Under the pieces are notes generated by a model. It was given only the letters and a program-made list of their open reading frames with translations, ran no database searches and was not told where the DNA came from. This document shows, one piece after another, positions 12,153 through 52,492 of a DNA stretch of 64,000 nucleotides. Within the stretch, counting starts at the first letter, position 1; every line of letters begins with the position of its first letter. Source of the DNA: Podarcis bocagei (lineage: Eukaryota); the NCBI GenBank assembly GCA_964188305.1, contig OZ076886.1; one strand, written 5' to 3'. Both the position numbers and the translations under genes were made by a program.

Positions 12153-12762
12153 AAAAAACAACCACCAGAAAGACTTGTGGCACCTTGAAGAGTCTCCAAT
12201 TTATTGCAGCATAAGACTTGGTGGACTAGAGCCCAGTTCATCAAACATATATTGCATGGCTATAGAGAAAACAATTGTGAACAACTGGGCCAAAAGGTCA
12301 TGAAAGACAAGAGATCATGAGACAGAAATTCCTGATCTGAATACATAGGATTAAATTTACTGTACTCATAAATTCTAATCCAGCAATTTCACACTGGAGT
12401 CCTCGTAAAAGTTTTTGCTGCTGTTAAATGCTGGTGACTTTCAGGTTGGCAGCAGTGTGTCCTGAGAAAATGAAATAGTATCTTCCCACTAGCTTATGCT
12501 GCCTTAAAAAAAACATGTAAGCATTGTGCCCATTTACTCTTAACTGTGGATCCTTGCTTATTTGTCCTATGCAGACACTAGGAAGGCATTGTTGGCAGCT
12601 GATACCGTACCATACTTCAAAAAGTAAAAACCAGGACACCTCAAAAGTTGTTGAGGAAACCCCCAAAATTGTTGGGCTTTTTTTAAAGGAACAGTTTGGG
12701 CTGGTTCCTTTGACAAAATGCTGTGTCCAGTTGCTTTTTCTTCTGGGTCTGTCCTGTAGTAG

Positions 12763-14124
12763 CAGGCAGCTGGATCGAGGCGGGTCAGGGCTGCTGATTC
12801 TTTTAGATCTGTCAGCAGCCTTTGACATGGTCGATCACGAACTCCTGGACCACCGCCTTGCCGACGTGGGGATCCAGGGCACAGTCCTTCAATGGCTGCG
12901 CTCGTTTCTCTCTGGTCGGGGACAGAGGGTGGCGCTTGGGGGGGAATTGTCATCACGCCACTCCTTGGTGTGTGGAGTGCCTCAGGGTGCAATTCTCTCC
13001 CCGATGCTTTTTAACATCTTTATGCGCCCCCTCGCCCAGCTTGTCCGGAGTTTTGGGCTGGGTTGCCATCAGTATGCTGATGACACCCAACTCTATCTGT
13101 TGATGGATGGCCATCCTGACTCGGCCCCAGACACACTGACCAGATGTCTGGAAGCTGTGGCTGGATGGTTACGTGGGAGCCGGTTGAAGTTAAATCCTTC
13201 GAAGACAGAGGTCCTCTGGCTGGGGCGGGACGATATGGGATCGAGGGGGCAACTCCCATCTCTTGCGGGGGTGCAATTAGTGCCAGCACCGGCCGTTAAG
13301 AGTTTGGGTGTAATCTTCGATACCTCCCTCTCTATGGAGTCGCAGATTACAGCTATAACAAAGGCGGCATTTTTTCATCTCCGCCAAGCTAAGCAGTTGG
13401 CCCCTTATCTCTCTCGTCCTGACCTAGCCACTGTGATCCATGCGACGGTCACCTCCAGACTGGATTATTGTAACTCACTCTACGTGGGGCTGCCCTTGAG
13501 ACTGACCCAGAAACTCCAGCGGGTGCAGAATGCCGCGGCGAGACTCCTTATGGGGTCTTCGCTGCGAGAGCACATTCATCCGGTATTATACCAGCTGCAC
13601 TGGCTCCCGGTGGAGTACAGGATCAGGTTTAAGGTGCTGGTTTTAACCTTTAAAGCCCTATACGGCCTAGGACCCTCGTACCTACGGGACCGCCTCTCCT
13701 GGTATGCCCCACAGAGAAACCTACGGTCTGCAAATAATAACATCCTCAAGGTCCCAGGCCTCAGAGAGGTTAGGCTGGCCTCAACTAGAGCCAGGGCCTT
13801 CTCGGCTGCAGCTCCAAACTGGTGGAATGCTCTGTCAAAAGAGACTAGGGCCCTGCGGGACCTGACATCTTTCCGCAGGGCCTGCAAGACAGAGTTGTTC
13901 CACCAGGCCTTTGGTCAGGGCGCAGCCTGACTCCCTCCTCTGGCAACCTGCACATAATTCTGCTTAATTGGTTGCCATCAATTTGATTTAATTAATTTTT
14001 ATAATGAAATATTTTTAGATTGTGTGATTATTTGACTGATTATTTGATTGTTGTTAGCCGCCCTGAGCCCGGCTTCGGCTGGGGAGGGCGGGATATAAAT
14101 AAAATTTATTATTATTATTATTAT
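12763..14124 (+). mobile_element. 5'-truncated L2-clade (CR1/L2 group) LINE with a stop-free RT C-terminal region
   Basis: LLDLSAAFDMVDH, GVPQGAILSP, YADDTQLY, SRLDYCNS and LHWLPV motifs; stop at 13930; AT-rich 3' UTR, terminal stem-loop and (ATT)n tail; flanking TAGTAG at 12757-12762 and 14125-14130. Confidence 0.93.
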
Positions 14125-14539
14125 TAGTAGATCATTCCAGCCTTTCCAATTCTGTCTCTTCATTCTGTGGATATTATAGTTTTTAGAACGCCTGAGGCAA
14201 ATCTTTTGGATGAGATCACTGTCTGAGGAACTGGAACAAATTCTTGTTTCAGAGGGCTACAGTACAGATAATGGATGGGGAGACTGTGGCCCTCCGGAAT
14301 ATCCTCATGGTGCGGAAACGGGAAAGGGCAACCGCAGGCAAGTAAAGCTGTGCAGGCCTGGCTGGTGCTCCTGTCAGTACCACTGCCAGACAGTGAGCCT
14401 GTTTGGGGATGGGGAGGGTGGGCCAGCCCGGTCTGCCAGGAGGGCCCACTTAAGGACCCCTTTGACCCAGGCAGGGTCCTGCAACCCGGGTCGGCCCCTG
14501 CTCGAACAACTCCTTTCAATAAAACCAGTTCACACGTTC

Positions 14540-15420
14540 AGGTCAGAAGGGGGGTATATCCGCGCACGTGTGAACCAGCCCCGTGTGTCCTCTTCTGACA
14601 GTAGCAGGCTCGCTATCAGCGCTCCAGCAGGCGGAGGGTTAACGCTCCCCCCCCCCCGCGGCTGAATTACTATTAACCAGCTGCCACATGGGCGGGGGCG
14701 GGGCGGGGGCCATAATAGCTGCCGGCGGCGCAGCCGAAGACACAATTGATCCGCGCAGCGCCAGCCTCTCCCCGCGAGAGTGACATCATCCCTTCCAAAC
14801 CCCAACTGGCGCTGCCATTGGCTGTCCAGGTAATTGAGAGGGGCATTTCTGCTCTCCCTCCCGCCCCGCCCCTTTCCCCATGCCTACTTTGTGCGTCTCT
14901 GGCGCTGCCGCCGCCGCCGCCTCCTCCACTCCGCCTTCCTCCGCGCCCTCCGGCCACACACGCCCAGGGCAGGCGCCGCCGCCGCCGGCAGCAGCACCAG
15001 CAGCAGCGACGCCCAGGCCGGCCGGCAGCATCCCCTGCACGGAGACAAAAGCCCCCCAGGGCTCCTTCGCTTGCTGGAGCGGCCGAGGGACGGTTGGCTC
15101 GGCTTCCCGGCGCGCCGCGAGCGAGCGTGCGAGGTAACAGCCGTCGAGGGGGCGCCGGGAGTTCCGGCGGCGGGCGGCCCCTGGCCGGAGCTTTGGGAAC
15201 TGCGCGCGGAGCGGAGAGGGTCTGGACGGCTCTCCTCTCCCCCCACGGCTGGGCAGGGCGGGTTGCTTCTCTTCTCTTCCCCCCGGTTTCCCACGTGCTG
15301 GGGGTCAGCTTATGGGGGGGGGCGCTTGGGGCTCCGGTGCACATGGCGCCGGCAGGTGCAAAGCGGACCGAGCGAACAGCCCTGATCTGGAGGGGCGGGG
15401 CGGGGTGTTGGCTTTTTTGT
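14540..15420 (+). promoter_or_regulatory. CpG island promoter and probable non-coding exon 1 of PRR36
   Basis: Dense CpG; CACGTG E-box near 14566; tandem GGGCGG boxes near 14690-14710; splice donor GAG|GTAACA at 15133/15134 that can pair with the acceptor at 21454/21455. The TSS cannot be determined. Confidence 0.75.
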
Positions 15421-16434
15421 TAGGCTGGGCAGTTTTTGAATGGATCCTCCCGGCCAAAGGGAAGACTGGGAGCTGGATCCCAGGCTCTTCTCCGGGCTTC
15501 GTGAAGCCTTCGGGGCAGAATCTGCTGTGTTAGCCTGTTAGCCCCGTCCGCTCTCCCTCTCCGACCAACTCGTCACCCTCGGAGAGGGGAGCTGCACACT
15601 GCATTTGCTGTACCCGTTGGTGGCTATTCTTCTTGTTGCACTTTCTCTGGGTGCAGTAAGCAGGGCATTTTTTCCTTTTTAAAAAAGGCGTGATGCGAAA
15701 GGGGTTTTTTTCCCAGCAAGCTGATTGAAGCGAGCTAACGCTACAAGTGCATTAAAAGCGTCGGTACCGAAAAGCGAGGTTTATATTATATATAAACAAA
15801 CAAAAAAACAAAGCCTCCATAATGTCAGGGGCCACCGGGGGAAGTGGCTCCCATCCCTAAAAAGTCTCGCATGAAACCAGGAGGGACCAATTCCTAAGAT
15901 CTGCAGGCCCTTTCCTTTGTTAAGGGAGGGATTTGCAGTGGTGATGAGCTACCATCTCGTATGAACACACAGCCCCACCCTGTGCTTCTTTGTGAGAGTG
16001 AATAGGCTTTCCCTGGTATTGCTGGATGAATCCATTTAAAAGATAAAATGAAATTGAGGCTGCCTTTTTGCAGGAAAGGCAAACTGAACCAAATCTCTCT
16101 CAGCTGGTTACTGGAAGAACAAATGTCAACTATCTCACCTTTCATAGGGTCCCATGTAGTGGACAGTGGACAAAGGGGTTCCTTTCTCCCTCTCCATCAC
16201 AGTATACATGTAAAGGAGCCTGTCTCTAAAATGGAGAGAAAGTTTGTATTAAGGCTTTGTACTCAACAGAAAAAAGCCTCCCCCTCCCCGATTAGCTCCT
16301 CTCTAGGAAAGAGGCTACCCCTCCAAGAAAAATCCCACAGGAAATAAAGTAAAAAAATGGGGGTGGGGGAATCCAGGTGAGCTAGCGGCTTTTAGATGGA
16401 TGGCTGAGATATGCAGAAATGGGCTAGTCTAGAG

Positions 16435-16683: not shown

Positions 16684-17884
16684 CTCTAGAGGAAAGGCAA
16701 AGCCTTTTTGGGATTGAGATGAATGAATGAAACCCTTTAGGGCAAGGTGTATGGACCATTTGCTAGTAAAAGGATGTTGCTACAGAAGTGTGCAAAGGAA
16801 GGGCAGTGCATGAACACTGAAGGATAAGGAAAATCACTGGTGAGGTAAAGTACTTCAGTTATAAGATGGAAATAAGTTTGGGGAGTATGCATCAAATCAG
16901 GTGAGTTTTTAAATGGGAGAGATGTCTGCTAATCTAATCACCTACCTAACCTAACAGGAAGCAGAAGTCATGGATGATTGTGTTGGGGGGAAGATAATGG
17001 ATTGGGGTAGCTAAGCAGGTGTAACTGTGTCTTTACACACTGATGCTTCTAGATCGATCTCCCTGGTACGTACTTTGTGTAATTAAAGCGGATCGGCAAG
17101 GTTGTAGCTGGGGAACGTAATGGCCATCTCCAAAACCAGAAGAGAAATTATAGGCTTGCTAGCAGAGCTCTTCCTCCTGGGACAATAATTGGAACAAACA
17201 AAAAAACAAAAGTGAATGGGTGACTGTTGGCATGATCTAACTCTCTTGCTTTGGGGGCAGGGGTGGAGGGGCTGCAGCTCCCTTGCACTTCTTATGGCTT
17301 CAAGGAAAGAGCAGAGGAGGGAGCGTTGAGTGTCTAATGTAGCTGGAAAGTTTGGGAGAATGTGCAGCAGCATTCAAGGGCTAGAAAAGAAGCAGGTTTT
17401 CCCATGGGCCTGCCTTGGGCTCAGATGTGGACTGAAACATATGCTTTGCAGCTTTGGGTGATGCAGAATTATAAACATGCCAGGATGTTGTGGTGGGTTA
17501 TAAACAACCGAACAAGATATTTGAGACAACTGAAAGGTACTCATGGTGGGCAGTGGAAGGGTGGGGGGAAAGTGTAAATACAATTTTGGGCAGGGGGTGT
17601 GTAGGAGAGATTTCAGAGAGTTCAACTGTAGCATGAACAACACTTAGCTCTGCTGGGTTTTAAAATGTCAAGTTGTATTCATTAACAAAACAATATGGAA
17701 AATAAAAATTGGAGGCTGGTTATGACTTAAAAGTTAAATGGCTACCTTCTGTGATACTCCAAGGAACGGCATATGCATATATAAGGGATTTTGGAGGGTA
17801 CACACTTTCAGCAAGCAGAAAGTGAAACGGAAACTTGACCATGCAGGAGACAAGAAGGTCAGGAGAAACCAAAGTACAGCATTA

Positions 17885-19205
17885 CCGTATTTTTCGCCCC
17901 ATAAGACGCACTTTTTCCCCTCCAAAAATGAAGGGGAAATCGGGGTGCGTCTTATGGGGCGAATGCCTGCAAGCCTCGCGCGCCCGGCAGGAGGTCCGAC
18001 CGGGTGCGCGAGGCTTGGGGCGGCAGCCTGTCGCCCGAAGCACGGGGAGCCCTCTGGAGGGCTCCCCCTGCTTCGGGCGAGTGTCTGCAAGCCTCGCGCA
18101 CCCGGCAGGAGGTCCCACCGGGTGCGCGAGGCTTGGGGCGGCAACGGACTGCTTGCGCGCACCGAGAAGCTTGGGGCCAGCTGAGCTCAGCCCGCCCCAA
18201 GCTTCTCGGTGCGCGCAAGCAGTCCGCTGCTGCCCCAAGCCTCGCGCACCCGGCGGGACCTCCTGCCGGGTGCGGGAGGCTTGGGGCGGCAGCGGACTGC
18301 TTGCCGGCATGCAGAAGCTTGGGGCGTGCTGAGCTCAGCACGCCCCAAGCTTCTAGGTGCGCGCAAGCAGTCCGCTGCCGCCCCAAGCCTTGCGCACCCA
18401 GCGGGACCTCCTGCCGGGTGCGGGAGGCTTGGGGCGGCAGCGGACTGCTTGCCGGCATGCAGAAGCTTGGGGCGTGCTGAGCTCAGCCCGCCCCAAGCTT
18501 CTCGGTGCGCGCAAGCAGTCCGCTGCTGCCCCAAGCCTCGCGCACCCGGCGGGACCTCCTGCCGGGTGCGGGAGGCTTGGGGCGGCAGCGGACTGCTTGC
18601 CGGCATGCAGAAGCTTGGGGCGTGCTGAGCTCAGCCCGCCCCAAGCTTCTCGGTGCGCGCAAGCAGTCCGCTGCCGCCCCAAGCCTCGCGCACCCGGCGG
18701 GACCTCCTGCCGGGTGCGGGAGGCTTGGGGCGGCAGCGGACTGCTTGCCGGCATGCAGAAGCTTGGGGCGTGCTGAGCTCAGCACGCCCCAAGCTTCTAG
18801 GTGCGCGCAAGCAGTCCGCTGCCGCCCCAAGCCTTGCGCACCCGGCGGGACCTCCTGCCGGGTGCGGGAGGCTTGGGGCGGCAGCGGACTGCTTGCCGGC
18901 ATGCAGAAGCTTGGGGCGTGCTGAGCTCAGCACGCCCCAAGCTTCTAGGTGCGCGCAAGCAGTCCGCTGCCGCCCCAAGCCTTGCGCACCCAGCGGGACC
19001 TCCTGCCGGGTGCGGGAGGCTTGGGGCGGCAGCGGACTGCTTGCCGGCACGCAGAAGCTTGGGGCGCGCTGACCTCAGCTTGCCCCAAGCTTCTGGATTA
19101 GCGCAGCGCACCTGGGGGGGAAATAAATTTTTTTTCCTTTATTTCCCCCCCTAAAATCTAGGTGCGTCTTATGGGCCGGTGCGTCTTATGGGGCGAAAAA
19201 TACGG
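17885..19205. mobile_element. Non-autonomous Tc1/mariner-superfamily (Tc2/pogo-like) DNA transposon carrying an internal palindromic tandem array
   Basis: Perfect 27-bp TIRs CCGTATTTTTCGCCCCATAAGACGCAC (17885-17911; reverse complement at 19179-19205), TA at 17883-84 and 19206-07, extra subterminal copies of the TIR core, and no transposase ORF. Confidence 0.92.
18085..19095. repeat. 148-bp-period GC-rich palindromic minisatellite
   Basis: CTGAGCTCAG recurs at 18181, 18329, 18477, 18625, 18773 and 18921, with a degenerate copy at 19069. Each unit is an imperfect inverted repeat. Confidence 0.97.
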
Positions 19206-21538
19206 TAAAACAAAAGGACCTCTTAAGATAATAACAGGGTGGGAGGGCAAAAGTTTCCTATCAGAACTGTTTGGCAATAGCTGATATTGACTGGGAAGGT
19301 TATTTACACGGAGAGGTGTTGTGTCAAGTGTGACTTAAGGGGTTGGTCCCATAAAGTTCATTCTTGTTGCATTGAACAAATGTGCTTTTTTGCAAATATG
19401 GTGCTGTTTGTGCATCTTTCTCTCCCACATCAAACAATGGGTTAAAAGTTAACCATTCTTTTCAGCATAGGAGTGGCTAAATGTCCTGGATGTTCAGTTA
19501 GGGCTTTAAAACAACCAGCTGAATAAGCAAATATGGGTGAAGACTCTACTCATAGCCCCCTCATTGCCTTGTGCTCTAAGAGCAGAATGGAAATGACCCT
19601 GGGAACTGCCTTCAGGATCTAATAGCTGTCAGCAGTCACTGAAGCTTTCTGCATATGGCTTCTCTAGAGTGGGCAGAAGGTAATGTGATCTGGTGGAACA
19701 TTGGGTGCCCTAGGATATAGGTGGAAGAGCCTCTCTAAGTCAGTGGGTGACTTGAGACCTATCTACCTAAGTCAGCTCTGTCAGTTCATGGGCAGCGGGC
19801 AAAGTATTCTATGACACTTATTGCCTGGGAAGACTGTGCAGAGGCTGCCAAGGGCCAGTTAGTCTTTCACTTCCTGCACAGTAAAATAGATCATTGGTAG
19901 TGTCAACGTTGGACCACGTGGCTTGGCAGCCCTCCCCTTGTCTTCTGCCCTCTCCCCTGGAGAGGAGTGCTATCATGTATTGTGGCCTCTGCAGCCACAG
20001 TTCATCACACTTCTGCTCAGGTACAAAATTACCACTGGCAACAAGGCTTGGTTGGTCCCAAACCTGCTGTGCAAACTGCATCAGGTGCACCCAAGGTTCT
20101 CATAAGGGGAGCTCTCCCGACCTGGTACCCTCCAGTTGCTTTCGGCTTCAGCCAGTGTTCTATGCTGGCAGGGGCTGATTTGATGGCAGGGGCTGCTCTC
20201 GTCAAATCAACCCAAGATTCAGTGCATGGCAGTTGCATAAGGCCTTCAGCTCTTTTGTATGCTACATGCCAATCCTGGATAATCAATGTGGATAAACCTT
20301 GCATTTTAAATAGGCTCCAAGCAAGTGTGTGTAAGTACGAGGCATTTTCTGGAACAAATTTGCATCTTCTGTTTTGCTGTTCACCTTGTCTCAGAGGCAC
20401 TTCAACTTTCCCTGTAAAGTTTTGAGTCTCTCCTCAGTTTAGAGGCAGGAATTGAACTGTCTTCAACAAATCCCTTAAAAAAAAACCAACCCACCCTCCA
20501 AAGCTAAGACATGTTTAAAATAACTTCCTCTCTTTGGTCATACTGAAAAGGGCTTTGATAGGAGATCTAATTATCTAATAGTATGGCTCTGAGCTGCCTT
20601 GGTTTTGCGGCATAGGATTTATTGTTGAATATAAATTTCAGCTACAGTAGTGGTTGTAAATTTTGTAGCGATCTTTTAAATGCCTTGACGGTCCATTGGA
20701 TGCCATCTGGGAAGAGTCCTCCTTTCAAGTTATACTCTGTCTTGGCCTGTCCCTGCCAGCTGCTCTTCCACTGATAAGTCACATGGGAAGGCATAGGGAG
20801 CAGAGCATGGTGAGGAATATCAGGTTCTCCTTCTGCTGGTGGATTTGGTTTTCTTTCTCACCACATCCCCCAAGCTTGAGTGCTCTGTGGTTTTGATGGA
20901 ACACATTTCTTTTCTTTTCTTTTTTTGCTGGGAGTGACGGAACCCTTGTTGCAAAGTAGACAGCTAAAATAGTTGCCAGCCATGGGCAAATGCTGCTCTC
21001 TGGGCGGCAATGTTCCTGATTTGTCACTTTGCACAGTGGCAGAAATAGGGCTAATCTAATGAACAACACAACATTGGCCTTGTGACTCTAAGGTGGATCC
21101 TAGCAACGCAACTGTTGCTTGACTGATCTGACTTACCAGTAAGACTCCAACATAAGGCAGCTGCCACTATGACTTTGGCATCCCTAGAAAATTAGTTTTG
21201 TACTGCGTGGATGTTCATGCTTTTCTTTGCAGTCCCCCAATGTAGAATCCACCTCTCTGAAAGCTTTTGGCAACAAGCTGCAGATAGCTTCATGTGACTA
21301 GATGGCCGCATATGAATGCTTTTGTGTATATAGTCAGTGCTGGCTTTTTGCATCCGAAGCAGCTGTGAGAGTCATCTGCAATACTACACACAATCCCCGC
21401 AGAGCTTCATTGGGGTGGGGTTCCACACAAAGTGTTGGTGGTCCTCTTTTTCAGGTCGCAGGTGAAAACGGAGCCCTGCACCTGGCCTAGCGGTTCAGAG
21501 AGGTACGGACAGCCTGCCCAGTGTCAGTCGGTGCGAAG

Positions 21539-30742
<9,204 letters not shown>

Positions 30743-42700: not shown

Positions 42701-45700
42701 GGCCTAGGGCTCCTAGGCATAATTCTCAATAGTGAGTTGCACAACGACCCCAGGGGTCTATTTACACTGGAAAAACCTGTGCAATAATCTTATCACCATC
42801 TCCAATGGTTCCTCCATTAGGATCTTTTGCCATATCCCTCTAGGGCCTGGGTCTCCCAAGGAAAGTCAAGCTCAGCCAACTACTCCCCCCCGCCCTCTCG
42901 CCCACCCTATACCCTATACCTGCTCTGTCTGGCTGCTGATAGGCGCTGCCATCTTTCTTGCTGCCCCCCAGATGGTGACAGGCACTTTCTCCAGGCCAAG
43001 AGGCCTTTGTATGACATTGCTCATTTCCTTCATGGTGGGGACGCTCTGATCCTTTGTTCAAGGGCTGCTCCTCGAGGGAGTGCAGGTCTCTGGTGAGGGC
43101 ACTGCTGGGTGGGATCTCTTTCCCACCATGCTTGCTGTCCTTACAGTCCCCGTTCACCTGGCCCATCCCAGGTCTGCTGTAGTTGCTGGCCTCATAATCT
43201 TGTGCCACCTCTGAACCTTCAGACATGGTGGAGGCTTCATCCTCTTCTTCTTCTTCCTCCTCTTCTTCTTCTTCACCTTTGACCTCCTCACCTGCCTTCT
43301 GCAAACATAAAAAGAATACATATATATTTACAAATCCAGGCCCTGCTTCCACAGCACCCCAGACTAATCACCCCTGTGTCTAACTCTCCAGGCTTACTCC
43401 ATGTTGGTGCCTCAAGTTCCTTGTTTCACTTTTATTGACTTTACAGTACTGTCCTACACATAATTGTTGTTAATGGTGCTTACTGCCAGGCTAAGGGTGT
43501 ATGGGATTGTGGCCTTTTGCTATGCCAACTTTCCTGGGAGTTAAGTACCACTGACCTCTGTGGCTGTTACTTCTGTCTAGACATATAAACAGGATTGCAC
43601 ACTTTGACAACTAAGCCAATCTACTTCCAGGTTACAATGTAATTTTACTCGGAGCCATTTCTTGTAATCCTGCTTCAGTTTCCCCTATTTGTTCAAAATG
43701 AGTTACTGTACAGTGGTACCTCTGGTTACACACTTAATTTGTTCCGGAGGCCCGTTCTTAACCTGAAACTGTTCTTAACCTGAAGCACCACTTTAGCTAA
43801 TGGGATTCCCGCTGCTGCCGCGCCGCCAGAGCACGATTTTTGTTCTCATCCTGAAGCAAAGTTCTTAACCCTAGGTACTATTTCTGGGTTAGCACAGTCT
43901 GTAACCTGAAGCATATGTAACCTAAGGTACCACTGTACTTGGAACCAGTGGTGTTGCTAGTCTGGGTAAAGGCCTCCACAATACTACCGCAAAATGCTCA
44001 GAGGCTCTTTGAAACACAGCAGGAGCCTTCTAATCCAAGAAGAGATGGAATCAAACTTCAGCCACACCATCCCTCCACTTGGCTTTGTTGTGCAGATCCG
44101 CCTAGATTTATGGAAATCTATTGCCATCCTTGTAACAGAAAACTTGCCAAAAATAAGAGAGAACTGAAAGGGGCTTCTTTTTACTGGACTGTAATTGTAT
44201 TCTACCCTTGATAATTGCTCTGATCCTTACTGGATTGGGTTACATTCCAGAGCTGGTCACCCTCCTGACATGAGGGTGACATGATTTCTCCTTTTCTGCT
44301 CCCCCCTCCGCTCCCCGTTTGCATTCGCTGCCTTACTACTCCCACCACCTCCCGACCTTACTGGAGGTTACAGAACCCTTTAGGTCAAGCACAAACTGAC
44401 TCTTTGTTCTGTGTTTATACGGAGCCTGGCACGGCCTGAGTTTGGCGGGGGGGTGGGGGTGGCGAGGTCGGAGAAGGGGCCACTGTCCATGGCCCGACGT
44501 GCATCCTCAACGCCGCACAAATGTCACCGGAGGGCCACGCACGCAGGTGAGCGGAGCCTCTCCACACGCCCGGGGTTGGTTCTTACCCGCTCCCCAACTC
44601 GGCCCCGCAAGTTCCCCGCGGACCAGGCGGAGTTGTGCCATCCAGCGGCGGCCTTTCCGCTCACCTTCCCACAATACTTCGGAACTGCACGGGAGAATGT
44701 CGCCCCGTCGAAGCCCAGGCACCAATCGTGGCGCCCCCTCCCGTGCCAAAGCGATTTGATTGGGCGCTGCCCATAACTCTTCCTCCCAGACACACGCACA
44801 CCTGCGCGAGCGCCCGCTGACAACATTCGGGGGGCTGGGCGCCGTCTGCCCTCCCCGAAAGCGGCTCCTCTCCGGCGCCCGCCCCTCCGCTCCCCCCCCC
44901 GCGCGCCCAGTGTTCGGGCACCCCCTGCGCGCGCACTCCTCCGCTAGGTCCGTTTCCGTCCTGGGGAAGCTCACCTGTTCCCCTCAGCCCGTGCGCCCCC
45001 GCCGCCCCGCCCCCACCCCCTCCCCCCGCGCGCGCCGCGGCAGCCCCTCACCTTGTTCCTGTAAGCCCTGGCGCTGGGCGCCCGGGCCTGCGCGCCTCTC
45101 TCCGCCCTGGGCAAGGCGACGCTGTTGCCGCTGCCGCCCCCGCCCCCGCCGCCACCCAAGCGGGTCCTCTCCAGCCGCTCCTCTTGGAGCAGCCCCTGCG
45201 CTCGGCCTCGAGTCACTCGGCCGCCCCCCGGCGCGGCGCCGTCGCCGCCCAAGTAGCGCACAATCTCTCGCAGGCTGACGGGGGAGGGCTCCTCCGGGGC
45301 GGGGGCAGGCGGCGGCGGTCGCTCCCGGCCGGTCCGACGAGGAGGCGGCGGCTGCGGCGGTGGCGGCGGAGGAGGTGGCGGCGGCGGCGCGGCTGGCTCC
45401 GCGCGGGGCGCTGCACGCTGGGAGGACCGGGGCGTCGCGGTGGCGGCGGCGGCGGGAGCGCTGGGCGGGGAAGTGCGGGCCGGCCGCTGCGGGGCCGCGG
45501 GGCTGGCGGCGGGCGTTCCGCCTCGCCGAGGCGGCTGGACCCGCGCAGCGTTGCGGTACGAGATGCTTCCCTTGTAGCTGACGCGGAGCACGGCGCGCTG
45601 CTGGATGAGCTTCTCCAGCTCGGCGCGGGTGCGCTCCGGCTCCGGGCCGTGCCGCCGGCGCACCATGCGGCAGATGCGCTCCAGGTCCGGGCGCGCCTTG

Positions 45701-45789
45701 CGCGAGCGCAGCGAGTCGATGGTGTCCAAGATCCACTCCTGGTAGCGCGGCGCCTCCTGGCCCGGGGGCGGCGGCGGGGGCCCGGCCAT
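39435..45789 (-). CDS. SAMD1: Sterile alpha motif domain-containing protein 1 (atherin): N-terminal CpG-binding winged helix, C-terminal SAM, 491 aa
   Basis: Exons 45789-45052, 43298-42920, 42446-42356, 41003-40895 and 39593-39435; phases 0,1,2,0; 1476 nt. Winged helix [35 protein letters not shown]...[10 protein letters not shown]; [25 protein letters not shown]...[30 protein letters not shown]; Kozak accATGg. Confidence 0.96.
39677..39713. repeat. (AC)n microsatellite
   Basis: Read directly from the sequence. Confidence 0.95.
39981..40070. mobile_element. 90-bp hAT-type MITE in SAMD1 intron 4
   Basis: 13-bp TIR CATAGCTGTCAAC and perfect 8-bp TSD AACACAAG. Confidence 0.88.
43711..43935. 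mobile_element. Tigger/pogo-like MITE in SAMD1 intron 1
   Basis: TA|CAGTGGTACCT ... AGGTACCACTG|TA with repeated internal TAACCTGAA motifs. Confidence 0.88.
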
Positions 45790-46170
45790 GGTGTTGCCGC
45801 CTCCCCCGGGGCTTCGCTGCCCCCGTGCGCCGCTCCGCCTTGGCCTCAGCTCTTGCCCGCGCGGCGCCAACTAGACCCTCCGCCCGGCAGGCGCTGCTGC
45901 TGCTGGAAGCGGCGGCGCGCGGGCTGGTCCGGGCAGCGCGAGCTCCTCCCTCCCCTTCCCCCAGCCGCACGCGCCGCCGCCTCCACCACCGCCCGAGCGG
46001 GACCCGCAGCCGCTTAAGGAGGCGCTGTTGCCTCCCGTAGCCTCCCTACACTTGGCGGCTTAAGGTGGAGCAGGAGAATTCGCAGCGTCCCCTTAGCGGC
46101 CGCGCCGGCTGGAAAGGGCGCTCTCTGGCCGCCTCAGGCAGAAGTCAACAGCAGGAATCCGGCGAGTACA
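44420..46170 (-). promoter_or_regulatory. CpG island covering the SAMD1 promoter, exon 1 and start of intron 1
   Basis: Very high GC and CpG density around the ATG at 45789. Boundaries are approximate. Confidence 0.85.
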
Positions 46171-52359: not shown

Positions 52360-52492
52360 NNNNNNNNNNNNNNNNNNNNNNNNNNNNNNNNNNNNNNNNN
52401 NNNNNNNNNNNNNNNNNNNNNNNNNNNNNNNNNNNNNNNNNNNNNNNNNNNNNNNNNNNNNNNNNNNNNNNNNNNNNNNNNNNNNNNNNNNN
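52360..52492. other. Assembly gap (133 N) inside the PRKACA 3' UTR
   Basis: Run of N. Confidence 0.99.

Follow-up and report, generated by a model that had tools for sequence, protein, structure and literature searches.

A recently inserted, probably pogo-type MITE of the lizard Podarcis bocagei with an array of 148-bp two-hairpin units as its interior

We report a transposable element of 1,321 bp at positions 17885-19205 of a 64,000-nucleotide stretch of Podarcis bocagei DNA (contig OZ076886.1, assembly GCA_964188305.1; the whole stretch is hereinafter called the window). The element has perfect terminal inverted repeats (TIRs), a TA target-site duplication, and an orthologous site that is empty in three other organisms; its ends are multicopy, and its 148-bp repeated interior is rare. 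We consider it likely that this is a recently inserted non-autonomous cut-and-paste transposon, namely, an oversized Tc1/mariner MITE, most likely of the pogo (DDE_1) type, which carries the tandem array as cargo. The initial annotation of this DNA described a DNA transposon with a self-complementary tandem array, and the perfect TIRs, the TA flanks, and the 148-bp array all agree with that description.

The 27-nt TIRs at 17885-17911 (plus strand) and 19179-19205 (minus strand) are complementary at 27 of 27 positions, or over 30 nt with the flanking TTA/TAA counted; no such match appeared in 100 shuffles. The TA duplication occupies 17883-17884 on the left and 19206-19207 on the right. At the left end, the inner half of the TIR pairs with an inverted copy of its motif at 17945-17961, which gives a subterminal hairpin of 67 nt (17895-17961, plus strand; -31.6 kcal/mol, z -9.6); the same layout recurs in the metagenome MITEs L004 and L099. 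At the right end, a motif search finds a direct subterminal copy of the TIR inner motif (19162-19175, minus strand), which adjoins a hairpin with a G-run and a C-run round an A/T-rich loop (19106-19166; fold z -4.6). The inner motif is therefore present in a second copy at both ends, inverted at the left and direct at the right, and the copy at 19162-19175 is a likely second transposase-binding site. No further copy of the element ends or of the 148-bp unit occurs within the 64-kb window. The open reading frames of the element are stop-free runs through the repeat and contain no Pfam domains. MITEs are usually shorter than ~0.8 kb; the present element exceeds this size owing to its array, and an array-less core would be ~0.25-0.4 kb.

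The element is located in non-coding DNA between a LINE open reading frame, CpG-island-like stretches, and a low-complexity frame. The first of these, a frame of 468 codons with a reverse-transcriptase domain (12524-13930, plus strand; RVT_1, E 4e-27), lies 4 kb upstream of the element and is what remains of a LINE-type retrotransposon. The low-complexity open frame (25239-28187, plus strand; 982 codons) abounds in Ser, Pro, Glu, and Ala and contains, at 26033-26253, 78-bp (26-codon) repeats in tandem; neither Pfam nor PDB gave a match, and the frame probably represents a large exon of a gene. A very strong CpG island, in which GC reaches 0.79 and CpG observed/expected is 0.98, lies at 44001-46000 and includes a run of GGC triplets (45344-45393); a weaker CpG-island-like stretch is found at 14001-16000. 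The run of 133 N at 52360-52492 is an assembly gap or a mask.

Contigs of three runs, X15 (organism A), X9 (organism D), and X13 (organism F), as well as the raw reads of run X24 (organism D), were aligned to positions 17000-20100. One contig each from X15 and X9 passes from 17882 to 19206, and two letters fit either side; in the X13 contig, 17884 is followed by a single letter and then by 19209, which is equivalent to a substitution beside the site. The orthologous site in all three organisms is thus empty and has a single TA. Since the joint skips 1,323 bases and has exactly two shared letters, the target duplication is TA, the insert is 1,321 bp long, and duplications of 3, 4, and 8 bp are excluded.

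This result bears directly on the superfamily. Target duplications comprise 3 bp (TWA) in PIF/Harbinger, 8 bp in hAT, and TTAA in piggyBac. The TTA...TAA flanks recall the TWA duplication, and Harbinger was indeed our first impression, which was dropped because the empty site shows a 2-bp duplication; the empty site also contains TTAA, as piggyBac would require. An origin from any of these three superfamilies nevertheless disagrees with the 2-bp TA duplication, with the TA that precedes 105 of the 122 ends in the metagenome relatives considered below, and with the occurrence of the same end on DDE_1 elements, so that we give it almost no credence.

The flanks differ from the window at 9 of 1161 positions in X15 (organism A), 31 of 1778 in X9 (organism D), and 56 of 1777 in X13 (organism F). 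As the site is empty in the nearest organism, the flanks of which are 0.8% diverged, the insertion must be younger than this divergence; the earlier view of the element as mobile and recent is thereby confirmed. The depth of the empty-site contig in X15 (97 versus 100-115 nearby) is full, and the X15 animal is therefore not a heterozygous carrier. It was also observed that all three other organisms have 9 extra bases after 17770 and have several differences from the window in common (e.g., at 17829, 19309, and 19882); consequently, the window haplotype has derived changes or deletions of its own near the insertion.

Neither filled junctions nor sequence spanning the array at this locus were found in the four runs (contigs of X15, X9, and X13; reads of X24), and the array at the locus is thus known from the assembly only. 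Together with the empty site in all three contig sets, this is what one would expect if a short MITE or an empty site had been inflated by misassembly of repeat-rich reads. Such an artefact would hardly produce exact junctions with perfect TIRs and a TA duplication; moreover, the variants of the units are orderly and do not look like noise, and array-like sequence is present in both reads and contigs of relatives. We therefore regard an assembly artefact as highly improbable.

The exact end sequence has no match in the metagenome or viral contigs. A degenerate end pattern, with 5 of the 27 positions left open under the guidance of a fish MITE end, has no match in the viral contigs either, but it matches host-derived metagenome contigs, at least 120 of them, which belong to several sample series; by this sequence criterion, the end motif is conserved across very different hosts. 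Complete pairs of ends have TA on both sides in 42 of 57 cases. Most of these relatives are MITEs of 335-680 bp with an ordinary fold energy (-0.10 to -0.21 kcal/nt).

The connection of this end to a transposase is provided by two metagenome contigs, L023 and L099, which have unrelated flanks and, beginning immediately inside the end, align for 1,205 bp with 91% identity. The inward-reading strand of the aligned stretch contains a decayed transposase with a DDE_1 domain (PF03184, E 6e-14) and an acidic tail; the Tc5-type DNA-binding domain (HTH_Tnp_Tc5) is weak (E 0.006, below the cut-off). We interpret L023:1645-2889 and L099:5067-6500 as copies of a decayed pogo-type (DDE_1) transposon of an AT-rich host. 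A MITE of 357 bp in one of these contigs (L099:11079-11435) matches 224 bp (90%) of the subterminal sequence of the pogo-type element and looks like its deletion derivative.

Compared with the ends in L023 and L099, the lizard TIR is identical at 25 of 27 positions, and the right end at 42 of 46, including the direct subterminal repeat; the left end agrees with this group at 54 of 76 positions, including a T-run and the inverted motif copy. The group therefore resembles the lizard element in the TIR, in the layouts of both ends, and in the TA flanks. It differs in that its MITE copies are AT-rich (GC 0.32-0.38), 335-366 bp long, of ordinary fold energy, and free of the hairpin array. On the strength of the sequence comparison, the end of the lizard element can be linked to pogo-type transposases in other hosts; the shared ends support a pogo-type partner but do not prove it for the lizard, the assignment being based on two decayed elements of another, AT-rich host. 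No autonomous partner is seen in the lizard DNA covered, i.e., in the 64-kb window. In a further contig (L058:6263-9036), a pair of end motifs encloses 2.8 kb with a DUF4817 helix-turn-helix fragment, which belongs to another Tc1/mariner type, and a mariner-like remnant; the DUF4817 fragment probably stems from another Tc1/mariner element that became nested there. The longer TIR-bounded stretches in L016, L021, and L058 contain no transposase of their own.

As for the interior, Tandem Repeats Finder reports a single array in the region, at 18088-19094 (period 148, 6.8 copies, 96% matches, score 1790). According to this program and to folding, it includes six full 148-bp units (18181-19068, plus strand), each composed of a hairpin A and a hairpin B, and is closed by a decayed partial unit (19069-19094, plus strand). 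Among the full units, 0-7 of the 148 positions differ, with no difference at all between units 1 and 3. When one 74-bp half of the consensus unit is set against the other in inverted orientation, 65 of 74 positions coincide; the two inverted halves of about 74 bp and the symmetry axes proposed initially agree with this. In single-stranded DNA, the unit is predicted to form two hairpins of ~33-35 bp each, with a fold energy of -81 to -86 kcal/mol versus -39 for shuffled sequence (z -13 to -15). A recurrent 9-mer had been said to occur, counting its complement, four times per unit; this holds, and the element contains 13 occurrences of the 9-mer and 15 of its complement, as compared with 2+2 in the remaining 62.7 kb. 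The suggested relation of the period to the 147-bp nucleosome core finds no support, as the period is simply the size of two 74-bp hairpins.

The count of six full units at 18181-19068 was correct, but the part at 17960-18185 does not consist of partial units: it contains a C hairpin and two B hairpins that are opposite in orientation to those of the array. The first reverse B hairpin (17970-18017, minus strand) has a loop that is the reverse complement of the B-hairpin loop in the array; the second (18088-18135, minus strand) was recognised by inverted-repeat and loop comparison. The C hairpin between them (18023-18088) is a distinct GC-rich palindrome with a single occurrence, defined by an inverted repeat (I21) with 32-nt arms, 88% complementary, and by folding. 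The order of modules is B(reverse)-C-B(reverse)-A, followed by (B forward-A) x6 and by the decayed partial unit, which ends at 19094. At 18185 the direction of the repeats is reversed, and the best-preserved palindrome (18088-18283; inverted repeat I11, 98-nt arms, 94% complementary) has its axis at 18185/18186.

The fold-back in many registers foreseen in the initial annotation is also found: register-shifted self-pairing yields inverted arms of up to 476 nt that are 87-94% complementary (87% for the 476-nt arms). The fold of the whole element has -766 kcal/mol, i.e., -0.58 kcal/nt, versus -0.10 to -0.21 in the array-less relatives. These properties, as well as the flip of direction at 18185, are those of a foldback-type mobile satellite, in which the array would be the active part, would seed satellites, and would readily change its copy number via cruciforms. 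Certain short contig joints in X15, with sides of only 22-24 nt, point the same way: they skip 591 or 1,083 interior bases, hinting at copies with fewer units or with none. The structure is, however, very unequal on its two sides (~0.3 kb in reverse orientation as against ~0.9 kb forward), its true terminal repeats measure no more than 27-30 nt, and the long symmetric TIRs of tandem subrepeats that are a trait of FB and Tetris elements are absent. The read depth in X24 is a further objection. With single-copy flanks at ~1.07x, the left-end bin has 1,589x, the right-end bins 292-519x, and the array bins 0-26x; compared with ~1,600x at the left end, no satellite has grown from the array there. 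The unit is not an expanded satellite in that relative, and the proposal of a satellite seed is not borne out. We believe that a foldback satellite is unlikely.

The same reads characterise the family for which we prefer the reading of a MITE with the array as cargo. About 2,750 X24 reads have unrelated sequence before 17881-17883 (consensus agreement near 0.33), and the left end is thus present at many different insertion sites; 1,077 reads pass after 17966 into a different, common interior. Only 22 of the 5,710 aligned reads have a likeness of at least 99%, and 5,198 fall at 90-95%. It follows that the family with these ends comprises ~10^3 mostly diverged copies, and the array bins add up to ~46 unit equivalents in this relative, both values being valid to an order of magnitude only, as they are derived from ~1x depth and from partial alignments at a likeness of at least 90%. 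Within this large MITE family, the 148-bp interior represents a rare and young variant of the cargo, and most copies have other interiors.

The units themselves retain some record of how the array grew. The arms of hairpin A differ by one and the same 9-nt block in six of six units; around the first axis (18185), hairpin A has one version of this block in both of its arms. Considering that the mismatch is found in all six units and not at the first axis, the palindrome was already imperfect when the 148-bp A+B unit began its head-to-tail copying. From this pattern we infer direct duplication of an already diverged two-hairpin unit, and not the production of units one by one via fold-back synthesis. 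Variants are common to blocks of units (unit 1 equals unit 3, and units 2 and 5, 4 and 1, and 6 and 2 resemble each other), which points to several rounds of duplication or exchange. Compensatory changes between the hairpin arms are absent among the six units; the variants give mismatches or wobbles. The 148-bp unit would thus have begun as a single imperfect palindrome, and its later multiplication as a direct repeat likely proceeded by replication slippage or unequal exchange between hairpin-prone repeats, or by template switching during repair of the excision gap.

Five of the seven variable positions among the units are CpG transitions, which suggests methylation in the past. The lineage has accordingly undergone decay of the methylation type. 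Its high CpG content is a sign of youth and does not prove the unmethylated state considered earlier, which need not be assumed.

The CpG-island-like composition noted in the initial annotation is real: 1.1 kb of the element have a GC of 0.72 and a CpG observed/expected ratio of 0.77, the latter being 0.54 in the left flank and 0.23 in the right one. These values lie within the usual CpG-island limits (>200 bp, GC >0.5, observed/expected >0.6), which concern composition only. Such a composition would suit a CpG-island promoter delivered by a transposon; likewise, the 33-35-bp hairpins resemble long-hairpin miRNA or siRNA precursors, and long-hairpin miRNA models of Rfam match below threshold on both strands, so that the element could be imagined as a source of hairpin RNA or small RNA used by the host. 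Yet the gathering score is not attained for any Rfam family, and the 155 long-hairpin miRNA matches obtained on both strands at relaxed thresholds are generic and strand-symmetric; we read them as a reflection of hairpin shape and not of kinship. In addition, a conserved role is impossible for an insertion that is absent in close relatives. The idea of a functional CpG island is not supported, use by the host in either form is very unlikely, and the element presumably has no host function. A scan for bacterial-style promoters and terminators, which is not relevant to a lizard genome, found none.

The architecture, which the initial annotation did not recognise, can be considered a variant of known tandem-repeat-bearing and foldback MITEs. 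One of the closest cases is miDNA4, a Xenopus Tc1/mariner MITE with a satellite that is present as a single monomer or as an array of variable length (Scalvenzi and Pollet 2014, as summarised in PMC12628747). According to that summary, both are TA-targeting vertebrate MITEs of the Tc1/mariner type, with an internal tandem array that lies between conserved ends and is transposed along with them. Relative to the summarised description, to which the comparison is confined, the lizard element differs in its unit of two long GC-rich hairpins, in ends indicative of a pogo-type partner, and in that a free satellite of the unit is not seen in the X24 raw reads. In Xstir, also from Xenopus, the internal sequence of a MITE gave rise to tandem repeats, and stem-loop formation is invoked for their growth (Hikosaka and Kawahara 2004, as summarised in the same source). 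As outlined there, Xstir is a different family with different ends, and its model joins neighbouring elements, whereas in the lizard a two-hairpin unit was duplicated inside one element.

Bivalves have the tandem-repeat-containing MITEs DTC84 and pearl, the flanks of which are termed a "cassette" for the core repeats; repeat variants are ordered along their arrays, and palindromes in the repeats are proposed as hotspots of length change (PMC3879986). DTC84 has an AA duplication, up to 5 repeats, a microsatellite tail, and a small palindrome at the unit junctions only (PMC3879986); the lizard element has a TA duplication, and its unit is palindromic as a whole. The Tetris/Foldback-like elements of Drosophila are non-autonomous, modular, and strongly self-pairing, with internal tandem repeats of ~220 bp, and Tetris has its terminal sequence in common with a plain MITE that the same enzyme mobilises (PMC4079207). 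The repeats of Tetris are located in long symmetric TIRs and have expanded to kilobase-scale satellites (PMC4079207), in contrast to the lizard element with its 27-30-nt terminal repeats, its one-sided array, and no expansion seen. Among reptiles, the anole has non-autonomous Tc1/mariner families with Tigger- or Tc2-like ends and without autonomous partners (PMC3014272). A search of the literature on MITEs and satellites of Podarcis and other lizards, as well as for the TIR strings, gave no description of the present family and returned only primer coincidences.

We presume that the element moves as follows. Its ends would carry the sequences recognised by the transposase, i.e., the 27-nt TIR and the inner motif of the TIR in its second, subterminal copy; the transposase, encoded elsewhere and plausibly a pogo-type enzyme of the lizard, would excise the element and paste it into a TA. 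The interior is a non-coding chain of GC-rich hairpins, and the array would be passive cargo.

A more far-reaching interpretation can be put forward only tentatively, and we consider it rather improbable. It supposes an active pogo-type MITE lineage in an amniote, the interiors of which are repeatedly rebuilt from GC-rich hairpin modules, possibly originating from the lineage's own subterminal transposase-binding hairpin. The hairpins would then matter through pairing of the ends or through silencing RNAs, and the family would scatter kilobase-sized CpG-island-like DNA.

On the preferred reading of a recently inserted MITE with the array as cargo, the known connection of MITEs with satellites gains a further case, from a vertebrate and rich in hairpins, and the picture of how such elements work stays unchanged; the fully palindromic two-hairpin unit is a structural twist and not a new principle. 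The element does offer a clean snapshot of the birth of a tandem array inside a transposon and of its subsequent carriage to new sites. Recently active cut-and-paste transposons are uncommon in amniotes. The absence of the insertion from a relative with flanks less than 1% diverged indicates that the family is active now or was so very recently, and the insertion should be useful as a population marker and in finding a live pogo-type transposase.
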